Part shown: positions 1-9,461 of the stretch, piece by piece
How positions within the stretch are numbered: position 1 is the stretch's first letter
Layout of the letters: every line of letters starts with the position of its first letter
Assembly: GCA_964035545.1 (NCBI GenBank)
Contig: OZ037771.1
Span: 12,032,480 to 12,096,479, forward strand
DNA length: 64,000 bases
Direction of reading: 5' to 3'
Source: Bugula neritina
Taxonomy: Eukaryota > Animalia > Bryozoa
Position numbers and translations under genes: made by a program
The notes under the pieces: model-generated
The model's database searches: none
Told to the model about the DNA's origin: nothing
The model's input: the letters and a program-made list of their open reading frames with translations, nothing else

Positions 1-681
1 CATTTTAATCCCGTTGGAGTGAAAATGTCTGTCATTGCATTTTCAATGTTTGAACGAGGAATTAAAGTTTCTGAGTCGAGGAGAAGTTGATGTGGATCAA
101 GTTTTAATAATACAAGATCATTAAGGTATGACTTGTAGTGATCAGGAGGAGCTTCTTCTACCCTGTAATGGCGATAAGCCAAGAGAGAAGTAAACTTTAA
201 CTCTAGTTTTTCAATGGAGTTGAACATCTCCATGAGAAGTGTCGATCTTTCAATTTTGGCATGGACCTTGTCTTTTATGCATTTCAATATTTCAGGTGTT
301 ACACTTTCTGCTAACAGTTCTTCACATTCATAATTCTCTAAAAGAAAGTGTGCTGGTACTACTGCAAAATAGCCAGTATATGGATTGAGTGGATCTAACA
401 CTTTTCCTTTCATCACTAACTCACAAACAGCAGTGCTGCTCTGGATATAATTTCTGACATTGAACTTATGTAGTGAGCCCCGGATAAGCTCATTACTGTG
501 CAACATTCCTTCAATGTTTTCAGTAAATACTGTAAAAGAGTTAAAGTGACTCTGACTAACTGCTTTCCGAAGAATTTCTTGGACTTTGATAGTTGCACCT
601 TTACCAACAACTAAAAGCTCTTTGCAGTCATCGGGTGATTGGTAAACAAGAGGATATCCAACTCCATAGTCATAGCAAATT
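1..681 (-). CDS. Long open exon with putative trypsin-like peptidase His and Asp motifs
   Basis: About 226 codons with no stop after the acceptor ttattgtag. It contains YFAVVPAHFLL (His at 348-350) and YLNDLVLLKLD (Asp at 117-119), resembling the TAAHC and DIALLKL motifs of clan PA proteases. The ORF track omits it because it has no stop inside the window. Confidence 0.75.
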
Positions 682-1580
682 CTACAATAAATACAAAATA
701 TAATTGACATGTTAAAGCAAAGGTTTTCAGACTTACTACATTATCTATAAATTGACTGCAAACTGGTTGGATGATGTGAAAAACCTTTGCTGGTCAACTT
801 TCAACTATAACCTGAGACCGCATTAAGAAGCTAAGGAAACCCCAAGCCATCTGCTCATTAGCTAGTTTTAAATGCCCACAAGAGCTTAGATATGAATGAT
901 ACAATTGTGGGTAAAAAGTTGACATGCATCAATAATTTACTCAGTTATTAGATCCATCAACTTGTCTGGGATGATCCAGTCATAAGGTGAATAATCAGAA
1001 GTCATTGCCTCTAAGGAGTAGGTCTGCCCATTGATGTCCAGCTGAAAGATGGGATAATTATCAGGCTTGTCTGAACTAGAGCTCACTATATCATCATAAT
1101 CTGGGGGTGATGCTGGTTTCTCTACAATTAGTTTAAAATTTCATTGAATATAATTTTTTGACATTAAAAGGCTAACTTTCAGATATAGTTTGTCTCAAAC
1201 ATTCCGATATGCTGATAATGTGTTATAAAATTGAAAACTTGTTTGAGAAATAAATTAAACTCAAAAATGATATTTCATTTCAAAATAGTAAGTAAGTTGT
1301 AAAAAAGGTATCTGCCATAGTTTGTAATTGCTGCATTTATCCATACCTTTATTCTTATTATCGTATGCAGTAGGATGATCCAAAAAATTTCTTTGCTCAA
1401 TGTTACTCCTAAAATTACAGATACAAAAAAGTTTGAATAAATTGACACAACGGCTTTAGTATTTTAAGGACTAATTTCTGTAATGAAATAGCAGTTCACG
1501 GTCTAAGGGAAATAATTATTGCAATGGTTTTGGCCATCCAATTATTTAATAAATTGGTCCAATGAATAAAAAAATTGTTG

Positions 1581-1657
<77 letters not shown>

Positions 1658-4600
1658 TATATATATAGATATATATATATATAATTTACATATATACATA
1701 ATATACAGATTCTCTTACTCTTGTGAGATTAACATTTCATCTTGTGAAAGGTTACGGGACTTTGCTGAGACTTCTCCTGGTCCAGCTGACATTGATTGCT
1801 GTTCTCGCATTGAAAGATATGGATATTTTAATTCTTCGAGTTCATCACCCGGTGCACCTGCATTGCATATCATGCATTAAATCCCCAACTGCATAAAAAC
1901 ATGTGCATGTATGATGTAGTTATAATTGTGTACAAGGAAATGCTAGATCAATGGTTCTGTGCAACATAAATGTGCATGCTGTTTTGATTTAGAATATTTC
2001 AACTGCATCACCTAATTCAGCAGCCCCCAACTGGAGCCGATCGAGGATGTACCCGTGGCTGTAGAGGATGTCATAGGTGGCCCAATGCTACCTACAGACA
2101 AGTATCATTTGCGGGCTCCCACCTTCTGTGTGGAAGAAGATGTGGAGCAATTTATCGCTGAGTTCAGCTCAGTGGCGGCCATCTGCAGATGGCCTGCCAG
2201 AGTAACTCTGATACAGCTACGGTTGTGCTAGACAGGAACAGCCAAGTCATATGGTATTGGCCTACATGTCAACAGCATCTTCGAAGTGTTGAGAGTTTGG
2301 TTTGAACGACCATAGCTGAACCGCTTGCACAAATTGCTTTTGATGACTTGCCAGTAGAAGGCTCGAGGAGTCTTGCATTAAAGGCGTTTCTCCAGTCAGC
2401 TTGAGGCGACACCTGCAGGTAGCCAAAGTTGACTCGATGAAGAAAGCCCTCCAATTTGGGAATGCATATTTCTAAGCCTGTAGCACGTGTTGGTTTGGGG
2501 TAAATGCGCAGCAGGTAGAGGCCAAAGTTGGGCTGCCTCCGTCCAAGGCTGCTGTAATCATTCACCTGACTACAGCCACAGCAGCACTAAAAGCTACGGA
2601 GGACACGGGTGAACAACGACGGCCAACAGTAAAGTCTGCCAACTGTGGACTTTGGTTAACACCTCCGAGACTGAGGTGGGGGCCCAAGCCCAGTAAGGTG
2701 GAAAGCCCATTTTGCTTGAGTGGCAAGCCCCAGGAGAGTTAGCAGACCGCAAGGTTTGCCGAAGCCTCCAGCTTAGCTACTTGAGAAAATGCTTTGAGAA
2801 ATTGTCTATGAAGAGTAGGAACAGAAGCTATATTTCTGACGGCTCCCCACAAGACCTCGGCAACCCCTTCACAATCGAAAAGCGCAGGTGCATCCCAAAC
2901 TCCATGCACATGAGGTGTCCCCTCTAGGGACAAGCCGCTCCAGGAGTGCCTAGCCATTTGAAAGCAGTTTTGTGCCAGGCAAGCTTGCCGGCAAAGTTGC
3001 AACATTCCTGTTAGACAGGGGTCTCTTTGACATGTCAAGTGCACGATACAGGGCTAACTTGGAGCCATACAAAAGAAAACAGAGCACGTTGGCGGACAAG
3101 TCGTGCATTGCATTCTATGGTGTGATTGACCTGACATGATGAGTCGGTGATTAGATGATCAGGGAAACCTTCATCGTTACTTTGCTGAAGGAGGATACCA
3201 TCTGAGAGATGTCTTTCTTAAAGAGAAACAAGTGCCACATCGACCTTAACAAGTCAACAGAATGATGGACAGGCGTGAGCTTGCTTGTGTTGATAAGTTT
3301 GACAGGCTCTTGGTTGGGAGAGTGCAAGTGGTGTGACACTGTATTATTCTTGGGCGCTCCAGGGCTACAGTTCGCTGCAGAGTGAACTTTATGAAAATCA
3401 CTAAGTAAGGAGTGGTGAAAGGAGCACTTGGTGGCGTTTGGCTCGCGAGCAGTCTGAATCAACTGGACGAGCTTAAGTGAGTTCCTGGTACAGGGTGTTA
3501 GACCTTTCACGGAGCTGATTGAGTTTCCGGCTGGTTTGTTAGTAGGAAAGTTTCACTATGTGCAGGAGGAAGATGTCAGGCCTGCCCTGGAGACGGCAAA
3601 GGAAGCCTGTGGAGTACCCCCTACAAACAGTAGTTGACAGGTTCCTGGACACTTGGTAGACCTGTACAACAATACTTGTGGTGACTGTGAGAGTAACAGG
3701 GAGCGCCAGATAGTCACGCAATTACTCTCTGAGTACTATGATGTGTTAAGTCATGGTGACCATGACATGGGTTTGACCATGGCTGTCTGTTATGAGATAC
3801 ACCTGGCAGCGGAGACAGGGCCAATTCTGCAGCCGACTCGCTGGTTAGGTCCTGAGAAGGAATAGAAAGTGAGCCATCATCTTCTGAGCTGGGACCTGAT
3901 TGAGACAGCCCATAGTGCATGGAGGTTTTCAGCTGTCCTCGTTCAAAAAAAGGATGAGAGCCCGATGTTTTGCGTAGACCATTGCAAGCTGAACAGCGTG
4001 ACTATCCAGGATGTTTACCCTCTTTTGAGGATGCATCAGTCGCTGAATGCCTTAGCTGGTAGCAAGTTTTTAAGTATGTTAGACTTGCTGAGAGGGTACT
4101 GGCAAGTGCCTCTGAGTCCTGATGCACAGGACAAGGCTGCGTTTATAACTCGGAATGATGGTGGGCTCTGAAAGTGGAAGATGCTGCCGTTTGTACTTTC
4201 ATCTGCTCCGGCGACTCATGAAGCAGGTTTTCAGTAGGTTATACTGGAAAACCCTGCTCATCTACCTTGATGATTTCATTTTCATCTCCCCAACTTCGAC
4301 ACCCATATCAGTCGGCTCAGGGCTGTGTTCGATAAAATCTGAGCCACCACTCTAAAGCTCAAACCCTCTAAAAGTGCGTTGCTGCAGCCAGAGGTCAAGT
4401 ACCTAGGCCATGTAATTGGCCAGAATGGGTAGCTATTGACCCCGAGAAGGTATGAGCTGTAAGATACTGGTTTGTCCCTCTAAACCTCCACAAATTGCGG
4501 ATATTCATTGGGTTGGTAGGGTATTATAGACAGTGTATCCCTGACTTCGCAGGAATTTCACAGCTACTGAATTGGTTGACAGCAAATGGGGTTTGTTAGC

Positions 4601-7600
4601 AGTGGATATATTTGAGAATCTTAAAAATTTGTTTGATGAAGACACCTAACTTGGCACACCCCGATCTGACAAAGGAGTCCATCCTCGATACCGATGCCAT
4701 CAACTACAATGTGGGAGCTGTGCTGTCTCAGGTCCAGGATGATCGCAAGGTGATAGTGGCTTACTACAGTAAAGCAATGTCGGCCCTTAAAAAGAACTAC
4801 TGTACCACCAAGAAGGAACTCCGGGCGGTAGTGAAGGCTTTTAAGCACTTTAAGTCATATCTATTAGGGCTCTCGTTATGACTGCCAATAGATCAAGCAT
4901 CTGTGATATGGCTGTGCAGACGAGCTGAGCCCTCTAGTTAAGTTGCGCGGTGGCTTGAGTTCCTGGCCAAGTTTTCACACCGGATCGAGCACCGATCTGT
5001 AAAGAAACATGGTAATGCCAATGGATTGAGTCAGCGACCTGGGGAAAAGTGTTAGCAATGCTAGAAGATTGAGCAGGGGAAGTGGTTAGGTGTGCAGAGT
5101 TTAAGTACTTTTGTGATTGTTGGGACTTCCTTAAGTTCAATAGTGATGGGCTGCTGACAATAACGTTAGCAGCTGGTACACATCATTAGGAATGTGAAAG
5201 GGTAGTCTGTCCGTCTGCCCTGCGCCAGAAGCTCATCTGAGACACCCGTAAGCAAGCTCTTGCTGAAGCTGGGTGAATGACCAAGTGCCTACAGCTCTGG
5301 TGGCATTGGCCCAGGTTGACCCAGGACGTCTGACTTTGAGTGCGAAAGTGTGAGATATGCCAAGCTGGTAAACATGGCCTCTCCACTTGACCACGATGAG
5401 GCAACGCCTTCACGCTGGTCGGTTGTGGCAAATAGTTGTCGTAGATCTGGTGGGCTTCATGCCTACGTCTGAGAGGAGTAACTGGATACTGGTGTTGACT
5501 GACCATTTTACCCGGTGGGCTGATGCCCTGACTATTTCTGATGTGTTAACCTCCACGGTGGCCAGGACCTTGGATCAGAACGTGTTTTGTTATTACGGCT
5601 TGCTGAAGCAGATGTACACTGACAGGGTGCCCAGTTTCAATCGCAACTGATGGGCAACCTCTGTAAGGCATGGAAAGTCAACCAGAGCTAAGCTACTCTA
5701 TTTCATTCGTAAGGGGATAGGGTTGTTGCTAGACAACTCTTTGAGAAGTCTGCTACTAGATAGAAGTCAGGAAAAGTAGGACTTGTGTTGCCGAAAATTA
5801 TGTGAGCATACCGTAGTACCCCTGACTCTAGCACACTAGAGATCTCGAACTTTCTCATGCTCGGTAGAGAAACGAGAGTTCTTGACCACTTGACTTACCA
5901 TGTTCCTGCTGAAAAGAGCAATGTTCAGGAGTACGTGGAAGAGCTCATTACGGGCATGATGACGGCTCACAAGATTCTACGTGAGCAGCTATAGCGGTTG
6001 AGGAGTGACGACTCTGCTGAGCAGATTCCTCCACTCTTGGAACCCACGATCCGTCCCAACATGAGGGGAAGGCCGAGGTCCAATCAAGTTGGAGGTTATT
6101 GTGCAGCGGCTGGAAGAAGAGGCTGAAGAGCCGCTTGATCGGGCCCAGCCACCCCTACCACCAGTGGAGCTGGCTAGCACACCTGCAGTCCCAAGTGAGA
6201 TGAAACTTCCTCTGAATAATGAGGATGATAACATTGCGGAGAACCCACCTGTACAGATGGACCCCACGCACTGGAGGCACCGCTCGTAGTGGTGACTTCG
6301 CCAGGTGCAGCAAGTCCCTCAGTAACGTTGAAACGTAGTCAATGCACTAAGAGTCCCCCATCTTGTTTAAAATATTTATTTTGCGACTTAGTATACTGGC
6401 ATACTATATTATCAGTAAAAAGTAGTTGCAAAAGAAATTTGGGACCGATAATTGAGAGTTGCGTTCTCTAATTGAAACATTGATTTACTTCAACTGGGGA
6501 GTCACCGTAGGAAGAGCCAACTCACCGGTCGAGTGAACACTATATCATCTCTCTCATCATGTGGAGCGTTCTTTTTAATTGTGACTGTTGGAGGGAAAGC
6601 ACGCACTTGTGGCAGCTGGCAACCTCAGAGCCCTAAGTTGACAGTATGGCTGGGCCAGCAACTGTCGAAAGGGGTAAATCTATTAGTGAATTTTTTTTAT
6701 TTTACTTAGAATTTAGCCTAGTAGCCAATTGCAGTCTTGCTCTGTCATAATGATAGATTTGGAACTCCTGATGTCAGGTGATGTTTCTGACAGCTTTGAA
6801 GTTGAGTAATGGCCAGGATAGTTTACTAAAACCAGGAGGTTGATCGATTATTCAACTTGGCCGATGTGTAGTACTGACTAGGTGGTGTTCCCTACAACGG
6901 AGTGTGTGATTTTATGACTGGTACAAGTTTTGAATCTATGTACTCTGTTGCAGGTGAAACTGGTCTCAGTTCTTCGATGATGCGGGAATTGGTAGATCTA
7001 CCTCCCACACCATAGGAAGAGATCTCTGATTATTGGTTTGAGCTCTTGTCCAAACTGCATTTCTCCACACCGTCAGCCGAGCAGCCACCACTTGTCGTTA
7101 ATGCCATGCATACTGTAATATTTTTGGGTGGTGTGAAACGGATTAAGCAGTGTGCTTGTAGAGCAACAAAAAGAGTTGTATAAGCTTGAAATGATAATGT
7201 CTTTATTGTTCGTCTAGTTGTGTCCTGGGCGAGCTCTGGTGGAAGACTGACTAACAACCGTGAGCTCACCTCCTTATATAGTAGCAAAAAATCTAATAAA
7301 TAGTGATATAACAATATTATATGTTTTAAACTTTGTACCAAATCAGATATATTATAAAGATCCGTAAGGCAAGCATACGCTACGCAACCCTGAGGCCATG
7401 CATCATTACGCTAGCTTAGCTAAATTGACACCCACAGTGATACGCTTTGCTACCCTTTCATTGATTGGCTACCGATCACCTGATCATATGCCATAAACTA
7501 GATCAGCTGCACGTATGTAAAAGACAATCTTGCGTCAGCCCCACGTTGTCTAGCAGTGGAGCCGGCTTAGCTCAGTAGTTATGTTTTATTATTCTAGTTT

Positions 7601-9097
7601 AGTCATATAACATCTTGTATCTTGTATAGCTTTTCTTACTCTTGTATTATTCGGCATGCAATAAACATTATATAATTGTTGCACTCCGATTGTTATTCTG
7701 GATGATTATCACCAGCGCTGGCATTGTAAATACGTATGCTAGTTTCAATAACCCACACATTGTAATTCACAACAATATTTCTACAATGCAAAAGTTAATC
7801 GACAGCAAATCCGGTCTTTGTAGTTTTGAAGAATTAACAGCTATAACAGCTGCTTTAAAAATGTTATTTTACATAAATTAAACTGCATGCAGGCCACAAA
7901 ATCAATTATTTTTATAAAATTTATAGGCAGAAGGAACCTCTCAAATTTTTAGTGAATGAAGTTTTTCGAAAAACTGTATAATAAATTATCAATTTTAAGA
8001 GTTATATTTTTGGTTTTCAAACTGTTGACTGCAGCCTCTGACAAGCTATAACTATAGTGCTGCTAAAAATTATTTTGCAACACTTGATCGAAACTAGAAT
8101 ATATACAAGAATCAACAACATAACATTTGTAAGCTTGACAGGTGAGCTGAGTATGTGACATGTAAGCTGGGTATGTCACAGGTGAGCTCATATAATAAAA
8201 GATAGTAGAGAATCTGTCAGCCGTAAAAATAATTTTTCTAAAAACGTGATTATAATATGGCTGCTTTTTTGTGTTTCAAGAATAATAGAAGCAGTTTTAC
8301 TTACGTCTACCTACTGCAGCCTGAAAATGTCTGTGATGATCAGTTTGTGGTTGGTGACTCTCTTCACCATGCTCTTCACCTTGACCTTCTCCTGGGAGAT
8401 CATCATGAGAATGTTCTTCACTGCTCGTAGCACCATCTTCTCCTTGACTTCTACTTGAGAGATCATCATGAGAATGCTCATCACTGCTAGTAGCACCACC
8501 ATCTTCATCTGTTGGTGTTTCAGTTTCCTCCTTAGTCTACGCAGTAATAGAAGGAAGGAAAGGAGAGAAAGAGAGAGATTGCTTAGTGCTTAAACATTTC
8601 AAGATTTTAGCTTTGCTTGTTTAGATCAGTCCTAGTAGCTTGTATAGCCAGAGAAAAGACTGAATCAAAATTAAATAATGGTAATAGAATGAGATATAAC
8701 TTTGCGTCACTGCAATATTGTTGTGACAGATCAAAGTTTGGTTTTCTACCAAAAAAACCGCAACATCACTCAATTCTATTTCCTATACAGTTGTTATTGG
8801 GGGCCAGAGCTTCCTTTTTGGCCTCCATATTATTAAAACATTCAGACTGTGAAATTAAAATCAAGACCTACAAAACAAAGTATATTATAGATCGACCGCA
8901 AGGTATGTTCACCATTTTGTTATAAGGACACCTACTATTTCAGCAGGAGCTCTAAAATCTGTCTGCTTTCTCATTTCAGCCGTAGTTTTGCTCCTGCCTT
9001 TTCTGTAACTAAAGCACACCCATCCTGATATGAAAATGACTGAAATAAAAATAATCATAAGTGCTAATAGCACTGATGGATCTACTATCAGCTCCAT
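1..9097 (-). CDS. Uncharacterised single-pass membrane protein with cytoplasmic acidic region and putative C-terminal trypsin-like serine protease domain (3'-truncated by window start)
   Basis: Manual model complement(join(<1..681,941..1121,1347..1408,1719..1857,8305..8536,8936..9097)). All introns are GT-AG and phases chain 0/1/2/1/2, giving >=485 codons without a stop. It starts MELIVDPSVLLALMIIFISVIFISGWVCFSYRKGRSK (TM followed by basic stop-transfer residues). The acceptor at 1857 is weak (see findings). Confidence 0.65.
1582..1683. repeat. (TA)n microsatellite
   Basis: About 50 TA units with a few GA interruptions. Confidence 0.98.
2020..6470 (+). mobile_element. Degenerate Ty3/Gypsy LTR-retrotransposon internal region (gag-PR-RT-RNaseH-IN), antisense in an intron of the membrane-protease gene
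   Basis: Gag-like APTFCVEEDVEQFIAEFSSVAAICRW (~2110-2200). RT fragments VLVQKKDESPMFCVDHCKLN, LDLLRGYWQVPL and LLIYLDD. RNase H ILDTDAINYNVGAVLSQ...YYSK...NYCTTKKEL. Integrase WQIVVVDLVG...LVLTDHFTRWADA. Domain order RT-RH-IN is Gypsy-type. Many stops and frameshifts; no paired LTRs found; boundaries approximate. Confidence 0.93.
3720..5990 (+). pseudogene. Disrupted Gypsy pol (RT, RNase H, integrase)
   Basis: ORF fragments 3653-3865, 3869-4171, 4155-4355, 4612-4881 and 5387-5650, separated by stops and frameshifts. Confidence 0.9.
7122..7313 (-). mobile_element. Short solo LTR
   Basis: Minus strand begins TGTTATA, has TATATAAG then AATAAA, and ends CCCAAAA (probably mutated CCCAACA). ATAT on both sides (7118-7121, 7314-7317). 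Confidence 0.55.
7351..7774 (+). mobile_element. Probable solo LTR remnant
   Basis: Ends CACAACA followed by ATAT, and ATAT also precedes it (7347-7350). Internal ATTGG and AATAAA (~7660). The 5' TG is degenerate. Confidence 0.4.
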
Positions 9098-9295
9098 TTC
9101 TTTTTTCAATTTGTATAGGAGATGATGTTGTTGATAAGCCCAGCTGCTGCTGACACTTGTCTGTAAAATAAAATGACAAAACTGATGGTACTACAACAAA
9201 GTAAACAAGGATGTTCTATATTTTGCACAGAAACTATACCATGAAATAAATAAAGGCTACACTTATAGTAGTCACTCAGTCTAGTTTCAACTAAT

Positions 9296-9461
9296 TGTCA
9301 TATGGCGTCAGGAGGTGTCATATAACATCAAGTGGTGTCATATGGTGCCGTACGGTGTCAGGTGGTGTCATATATACGGTGTCAGATGGCGTTATATGTT
9401 TGGTGTTAGATAGTGTCGGGTGATGACATGATGTCAGGTGGTGTCAGGTGGTATCAGGTGG
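9296..9461. repeat. Degenerate GGTGTCA-based minisatellite
   Basis: Recurrent ggtgtca(g/tat) units. Confidence 0.8.

Follow-up and report, generated by a model that had tools for sequence, protein, structure and literature searches.

NAL1, known as a plant yield gene, encodes in rice a trypsin-like serine protease of the cytosol and nucleus; the enzyme degrades transcriptional regulators, and its active triad needs a hexameric cage. FAM111A and FAM111B are nuclear, soluble trypsin-like proteases of vertebrates with replication and antiviral roles, and the yeast protease Ssy5 (peptidase family S64), which has a chymotrypsin fold, works in the cytosol at the plasma-membrane SPS sensor, where it clips latent transcription factors. 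The type II transmembrane serine proteases of animals (TTSPs) have a cytoplasmic N-terminus, an extracellular, disulfide-bonded S1 domain and an activation cleavage motif. We analyzed a 64,000-nucleotide stretch of DNA from the bryozoan Bugula neritina (hereafter the window; contig OZ037771.1, G000:C7:12032480-12096479), together with its flanks and the 216-Mb genome that was searched. The start of the window holds most of what is probably one minus-strand gene of seven exons (E1 to E7), with a conceptual product of ~769 amino acids (aa): it would be a membrane-anchored, NAL1-like trypsin-fold protease whose enzyme domain is predicted to face the cytosol.

Catalytic residues and fold of the protease domain

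The motifs AVVPAHFLL and NDLVLLKLD, which an earlier note on this DNA had picked out with their His and Asp 77 residues apart, are located as claimed in E6 on the minus strand, with the catalytic His codon at 348-350 and the Asp codon at 117-119. That note had also expected the catalytic Ser to lie beyond the window start, and this is where we found it. In the flanking DNA, the E6 frame stays open for another 203 nt, up to ...FVVEDW and a gtaaga donor. E7 begins PLINGHSGTIVYV, its opening sequence is PLINGHSGTIVYVIDA, and within it an in-frame GHSG carries the Ser of NGHSGT. The triad thus appears in the order His, Asp, Ser (AVVPAH, NDLVLL, NGHSGT), with a G-x-S-G context around the nucleophile. 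E7 adds ~65 globular residues, the last strands of the domain, and a disordered C-terminal tail of ~150 residues before the stop codon.

These positions are conserved. In an alignment of 50 family sequences, the His and the Asp were each kept in 41 of 43 cases and the Ser in nine of nine true last exons. All six close paralogues have a G-x-S-G, as GDSG, GHSG or GQSG, and paralogue Ser exons read NGDSGT, KGDSGS or PGQSGS.

We then considered the fold. An AlphaFold (AF2) model, built from residues 55-425 of the GenBank Bugula protein KAF6024483.1 and the family alignment rather than from the window gene itself, reached a pLDDT of 90 and a pTM of 0.88. The triad positions fall in this model where they do in chymotrypsin: a turn after a strand, the start of a strand, and a loop before a strand. 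Foldseek against the PDB put rice NAL1 at the head of its list, and hundreds of clan-PA proteases came next. VIA-align again placed NAL1 at the top (Z 16.8, rmsd 5.6, 284 residues aligned, model 1-367 to NAL1 105-449), ahead of the FAM111A protease domain (Z 13.4), Streptomyces proteases (~13) and HtrA/DegS (~12), and an exhaustive structure search independent of Foldseek gave the same ranking. The model has two six-stranded beta-barrels, and the top 50 matches in the three structure searches are all PA-clan proteases (Z 10-17). NAL1 stands ~3 Z units above any other protease and is the only match that also extends over the beta-alpha-beta subdomain preceding the barrels. A shape search of the ESM Atlas likewise recovered a plant NAL1 cluster (TM-score 0.59 over 276 residues), along with mollusc clusters, and among language-model neighbors a minority of members carry Nal1_C, Peptidase_S64 or Trypsin. 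The model of this closest natural protein therefore bears out the double beta-barrel that the earlier note had proposed, and predicts a ~365-aa chymotrypsin-fold protease domain with an intact His-Asp-Ser triad. NAL1 and FAM111, which lead the ranking, were among the families that this note had named. Both fold and triad are ordinary for clan PA.

Sequence profiles pull in the other direction. The trypsin-type Pfam models PF00089 and PF13365 were unmatched at E up to 1-10 in the exons, KAF6024483.1, the Watersipora proteins and the 50 family members. Among the Pfam NAL1 models, Nal1_C (PF25819) matched one of the 50 family members at E 0.063 and NAL1_N (PF25608) matched none; a six-frame scan of the genome with PF25819 came back empty, as did its controls. 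A sequence search of the PDB, family profile included, gave noise only. On the modeled structure, then, NAL1 is the nearest known relative of the predicted domain, which by sequence does not belong to the Pfam NAL1 family.

The comparison with NAL1 (PDB 8PMI, 8PMM, 7Y77, 8HAU), the best match in all three structure searches (Z 16.1-16.8, 270-284 residues aligned), extends over both barrels and the preceding subdomain. The two share the His-Asp-Ser order and the lack of a zymogen activation peptide, and both would be intracellular, as the window protease is predicted to be. They differ in that identity is only 10-12%, one is from a plant and the other from an animal, and NAL1 has no transmembrane helix, acidic PPxY linker or long C-terminal tail. 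The NAL1 triad has been assigned to H234/D291/S385 (PMC12012508).

FAM111A/B (PDB 8S9K, 8S9L) provided the second-best fold (Z 13.0-13.4, ~196 residues aligned) and are intracellular proteases of clan PA whose N-terminal regions are long and non-catalytic. Here, however, the match is limited to the barrels (model 70-363), and the N-terminal part of the window protein is a transmembrane helix and an acidic linker. The PCNA-interacting, ubiquitin-like and DNA-binding N-terminal parts of FAM111 were not seen, though no search was aimed at them. The window protease is not filed as a FAM111. For a membrane-tethered cytosolic PA protease, the best functional analogy is Ssy5, and a Peptidase_S64 cluster is among the language-model neighbors; Ssy5 is nevertheless fungal and peripheral, held by partner proteins and not by a transmembrane helix of its own. 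Its Pfam model PF08192 found no match in KAF6024483.1, the Watersipora proteins or the 50 family members.

Probable linkage of the transmembrane exon to the protease exons

We rebuilt exactly the six minus-strand exons and the 485 residues that the earlier note had assembled within the window (54+77+1+45+1+20+1+59+1+226). Read from the DNA, canonical AG/GT borders and fitting phases are present at all six junctions of the seven-exon model. E1 opens with an ATG at 9097-9095 in a favorable context (gaaATGG) and encodes, in order, the eight-residue acidic stub MELIVDPS, a transmembrane helix (VLLALMIIFISVIFISGWVCF), a juxtamembrane Cys and the basic cluster SYRKGRSK..MRK, so that each element the earlier note had read at the N-terminus is present in this one exon. 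The hydrophobic helix spans 21-23 residues and is followed by CFSYRKGRSK. E2 is acidic and Ser-rich, with two repeat units of ~21 aa (DG(G)ATSS[DE]EHSHDDL...). E2 to E5 form the acidic, disordered stretch between helix and globular exon that had been described before, a 201-aa linker with 44 D+E against 14 K+R, 37 S+T and eight Tyr. An alternative E3 donor (c/gtaacc, the slash marking the exon border), which would skip E4, was dropped: the site is not kept in the paralogue, and both GA/GTAAGA and the 62-nt E4 are.

A tandem paralogue ~41 kb away has all seven exons (in L013, L007 and L019). It keeps every splice site and phase, with length differences, all multiples of three, of 9 nt in E2 (223 vs 232), 6 nt in E3 and none in E4, and it also retains E1 with its donor (CTA/GTAAGT). 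E3 and E4 are conserved in L013 and in L020, the GenBank Bugula locus, and E5 is 85% identical in L013. Between the two loci only exons align, together with a 20-bp tandem repeat and fragments of transposable elements; introns do not. The gene model is therefore not a chance construct, because the paralogous locus keeps exons, splice sites and phases while the introns hardly align. At the 3' end, the E5-E6 and E6-E7 junctions are the same as in the GenBank model, and the RefSeq model of the bryozoan Watersipora subatra has introns at both equivalent positions.

Selection was estimated against the paralogues as the ratio of nonsynonymous to synonymous substitution rates (dN/dS). E7 (0.22-0.24), E4 (0.26), E5 (0.31), E6 (0.41-0.44), E3 (0.46) and E2 (0.55-0.65) are under purifying selection. 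These values bear on whether the gene is a decaying or unexpressed tandem duplicate, a pseudogene whose open frames are left over from recent duplication. Such a history would suit a multi-copy family that includes truncated or transposon-disrupted copies (L006 lacks E1-E5) and a gene with a retroelement in intron 2. We consider it quite improbable, since all seven exons are open, the splice sites and the catalytic residues are intact, and a synonymous divergence (dS) of 0.16-0.44 from the paralogues with a dN/dS of 0.2-0.45 in the domain exons points to long-term purifying selection.

A more serious question is whether the transmembrane exon belongs to the protease gene at all. From the sequence comparison we favor one transcript joining the two. 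The alternative is that there are two transcription units: E1-E2 would encode a single-pass acidic membrane protein of ~133 aa, E3-E7 a soluble NAL1-like protease, and the fusion would be an accident of adjacency or a minor isoform. Several observations speak for separate units and thus weigh against a single membrane-anchored product. In Watersipora, neither the RefSeq model of the orthologue nor the 10 kb upstream of it contains a TM exon, and the N-terminal region of the orthologue is similar in length to E3-E5 alone. The TM exon was not found within 10 kb upstream of the paralogues L008, L009 and L010, and for L006 a stretch of 30 kb upstream is free of all of E1-E5; no PPxY exon turned up ahead of these four paralogues or of the Watersipora gene either. 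The other paralogues lack both E1 and E2. E1 has a dN/dS of 1.19, as expected of neutral evolution, even if frame, helix hydrophobicity and basic cluster are kept in this fast-evolving exon. The intron between E2 and E3 is 6.4 kb long and houses a retroelement, translation continuing beyond the E2 donor would end at a stop after three codons, and in the window copy an in-frame ATG precedes the E3 acceptor by five codons. Finally, the gene model of KAF6024483.1 has its start within the E4-E5 intron; E3, E4 and half of E5 are missing from it, and it calls nothing further upstream.

This last point is softened by the GenBank locus itself (L020): E3, E4 and E5 are present and open there, which indicates that the model is 5'-truncated. 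The first exon that GenBank calls (MLSKGIMSVILLHMLARIK) was rejected as an annotation artefact; it maps to the E4-E5 intron, and its counterpart in the window copy lacks an ATG.

The E3 boundary argues against two units. In the paralogue (L013), the E3 frame has an in-frame stop upstream and no ATG between this stop and the conserved, selected 5' part of the exon, whose first 16 codons have a dN/dS of 0.17; E3 therefore needs an upstream coding exon. Conservation reaches only ~40 nt upstream of E3, which suits an internal exon, as against at least 250 nt upstream of E1, where the conserved stretch is likely to be a 5' untranslated region or promoter. The E2 donor is a consensus site in the same phase in both copies, and no polyadenylation hexamer (AATAAA or ATTAAA) occurs within 700 nt after it. 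E1 and E5 are each found twice in the genome, only at the window gene and its tandem paralogue, and a scan for a transmembrane segment followed by basic residues picked no exon other than E1 on the sense strand and had no antisense hits. Weighing both sides, we regard two separate units as unlikely. The transmembrane anchor is in any case not a trait of the family; it is confined to the two tandem copies.

Predicted topology and possible mode of action

For the single seven-exon gene, topology was read from the residues around the helix. At 21 residues or more, the hydrophobic stretch is longer than a cleaved signal peptide would allow. The flanking charge is -2 before the helix (acidic residues Glu2 and Asp6) and +5 after it (15 residues with six K/R and one E). 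Under the positive-inside rule, which keeps the basic flank of a transmembrane helix on the cytosolic side, the arrangement predicts a single signal-anchor helix, with the N-terminus outside and the C-terminal bulk of the protein in the cytosol. The linker carries PPDY, several Tyr motifs and repeated SS[DE]E clusters, which look like features of cytosolic adaptor tails, and Watersipora XP_067946648.1 carries PPAY as the counterpart of PPDY. We read the protein as cytosol-facing because of the charge bias, the conserved PPxY and the intracellular nature of the nearest folds.

The opposite orientation would make this a type II membrane protease with an extracellular or luminal catalytic domain, like hepsin, matriptase or TMPRSS2. 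An N-terminal transmembrane helix followed by a C-terminal trypsin-fold domain is indeed the TTSP layout, and TMPRSS2 and other S1 enzymes do occur low in the fold list, at Z ~10.6. The charge distribution is reversed, however, with acidic residues before the helix and +5 after it; E6 has no R/IVGG-type activation motif and the domain no S1 disulfide pattern or S1 signature; there is no Pfam Trypsin match; and the nearest folds, NAL1 and FAM111A, are intracellular enzymes. TTSP stems consist of extracellular modules, whereas the stem of the window protein is disordered and acidic, a phosphorylation-prone PPxY linker typical of cytosolic tails. An extracellular or luminal protease is thus very improbable.

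The N-terminal half resembles another class of membrane proteins. LAT, PAG, NTAL and NDFIP-type PPxY adaptors likewise combine a very short ectodomain and a single transmembrane helix with a juxtamembrane Cys and a long, disordered cytosolic tail that bears Tyr and PPxY motifs. This likeness is one of layout, read from sequence; the adaptors have no enzyme domain and no sequence similarity to the window protein.

With its active site in the cytosol, the protein could act as an intracellular endoprotease tethered at the membrane, cutting nearby cytosolic substrates or itself. Through its PPxY and Tyr/Ser motifs, the linker would attract partners, for instance kinases or ubiquitin ligases with WW domains, and these partners would control the location, turnover or release of the protease. 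Clipping of itself or of substrates is a function that the window protease may have by analogy with Ssy5, FAM111A and NAL1. FAM111A is reported to autocleave and to restrict viruses (PMC10920703, PMC10469034).

Taken further, the window protein might represent a new type of animal protease: NAL1-like and cytosol-facing, with its own transmembrane anchor and an adaptor-like PPxY/Tyr/phospho-Ser tail, acting as a membrane-proximal signaling or immune "tripwire" with Ssy5-like or FAM111-like logic, in a rapidly duplicating and unrecognized lophotrochozoan family of the NAL1 type. We offer this wider picture tentatively, as possible but short of probable. In the overall interpretation of the earlier note, which had proposed a membrane-tethered cytosolic protease here, the Ser motif and the fold hold and the cytosolic orientation fits the charges; the anchor is restricted to the two tandem copies.

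What is new by structure is a distinct NAL1-like branch in the animal phylum Bryozoa, represented in this genome by six or more close copies and by as many as 18 exon-level matches to the Ser exon. Its members are annotated as hypothetical proteins only and are invisible to Pfam, and existing gene models for the family, such as the GenBank Bugula model, are 5'-truncated. Also new is the probable fusion of a NAL1-like protease to a transmembrane anchor and an adaptor-like tail. If this fusion is true, the protein would be a rare membrane-tethered trypsin-fold protease with a cytosolic active site, the mirror image of animal TTSPs, and would offer a simple system for studying the localization and control of intracellular PA proteases. 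We rate the interest of the locus as moderate, because transcript support is comparative and the distribution of the anchor narrow.

Family copies and neighboring elements

The closest named protein is KAF6024483.1 (P0040), a B. neritina hypothetical protein that is 85% identical, and the next named relative is the uncharacterized W. subatra protein XP_067946648.1 (P0045). Among 1.84 billion representative proteins we found only 39 matches, nearly all of them single-exon calls of ~300 aa, plus these two bryozoan records. One of the 39, a repetitive Streptococcus protein (P0021), was judged spurious and excluded from the alignment. A homologue search with KAF6024483.1, whose 232-aa cluster representative falls outside the length window used, was blank, and one with XP_067946648.1 returned its own isoform only; neither result has a bearing on rarity. 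Within the genome, the big exon has six close copies, all open, and two distant copies; for the Ser exon, matches number 12 at E <0.01 and rise to 18 when E is allowed up to 0.2. From these counts the protease family appears fast-evolving and multi-copy and, by sequence, almost restricted to bryozoans. A dozen weak Ser-exon matches on contigs C8, C6, C2 and C1 (E 1e-4 to 0.2) hint at a wider protease superfamily in the genome.

The family copies form two mirror-image groups ~400 kb apart, at G000:C7 11.98-12.04 Mb and 12.43-12.44 Mb. The minus-strand group comprises L009 (type B), L007 and the window gene (both type A), and the plus-strand group L006 (type A) and L008 (type B). This arrangement suggests an inverted segmental duplication. 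The L006 copy has lost or displaced exons 1-5. A further shared feature is an [RK]xHSEP motif in the disordered C-terminal tail, present in the Bugula copies (RRPHSEPYDVNAQS; E7 tail L004:9006-9440, minus strand) and in Watersipora (VKHSEPSKD, P0045 ~480-500), which may be a phospho-dependent docking site.

Table 1. Exons of the gene and neighboring elements. Positions refer to the window unless a locus or contig is named; in splice sites, the slash marks the exon border.
Feature	Position	Strand	Description
Exon 1 (E1)	8936..9097	minus	54 codons, ends in phase 0; donor ATA/GTAGGT
Exon 2 (E2)	8305..8536	minus	77 codons + 1 base; acceptor gcgtag/, donor GAC/GTAAGT
Exon 3 (E3)	1719..1857	minus	internal coding exon, 2 + 45 codons + 2, APGDELEELKYPYLSM...; acceptor cag/, donor GA/GTAAGA
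Exon 4 (E4)	1347..1408	minus	62 nt, SNIEQRNFLDHPTAYDNKNK; acceptor ttttag/, donor AAG/GTATGG
Exon 5 (E5)	941..1121	minus	181 nt; PPDY (PPxY), several Tyr motifs, LDINGQTYSLEAM leading into the globular domain
Exon 6 (E6)	1..681 in window	minus	codons 1-226 of 294; N-terminal beta-alpha-beta subdomain plus the greater part of the double barrel
Exon 7 (E7)	G000:C7:12031485-12032136, outside window	minus	last exon, after a short intron; stop codon at end
Conserved stretch upstream of the ATG	9098..9347	minus	likely 5' untranslated region or promoter; blastn island 8916-9347, 78% identity to paralogous locus, further pieces to 9514
Retroelement remains, long terminal repeat (LTR) type	2000-6300	plus	inside intron 2, antisense to the gene
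472-codon open frame	L004:7584-9002 = G000:C7:12030063-12031481, outside window	minus	four bases past the gene's stop, same frame
(TATA/ATAT)n microsatellite	1560-1700		long; intron 3
20-bp tandem repeat	8136-8212		intron 2

Several repeats and mobile elements surround the exons (Table 1). The LTR-type remains in intron 2 include frames for a reverse transcriptase (weak), a reverse transcriptase-RNase H (E 6e-26) and an integrase core (E 1e-5); a gag-like piece lies at 2055-2231. Their G+C content is 0.47-0.50 against 0.33-0.36 in the surroundings, and the frames are broken into many short open reading frames. The 472-codon open frame downstream of the gene begins with a (TA)n-type microsatellite, followed by YRDDG-like and YIG...RFNNHK-like motifs; Pfam gave no match to it at E up to 0.01, and its motifs suggest a retroelement with a GIY-YIG-type nuclease. 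At the paralogous locus (L013 7535-7855), the 20-bp tandem repeat of intron 2 is expanded to a far higher number of units.

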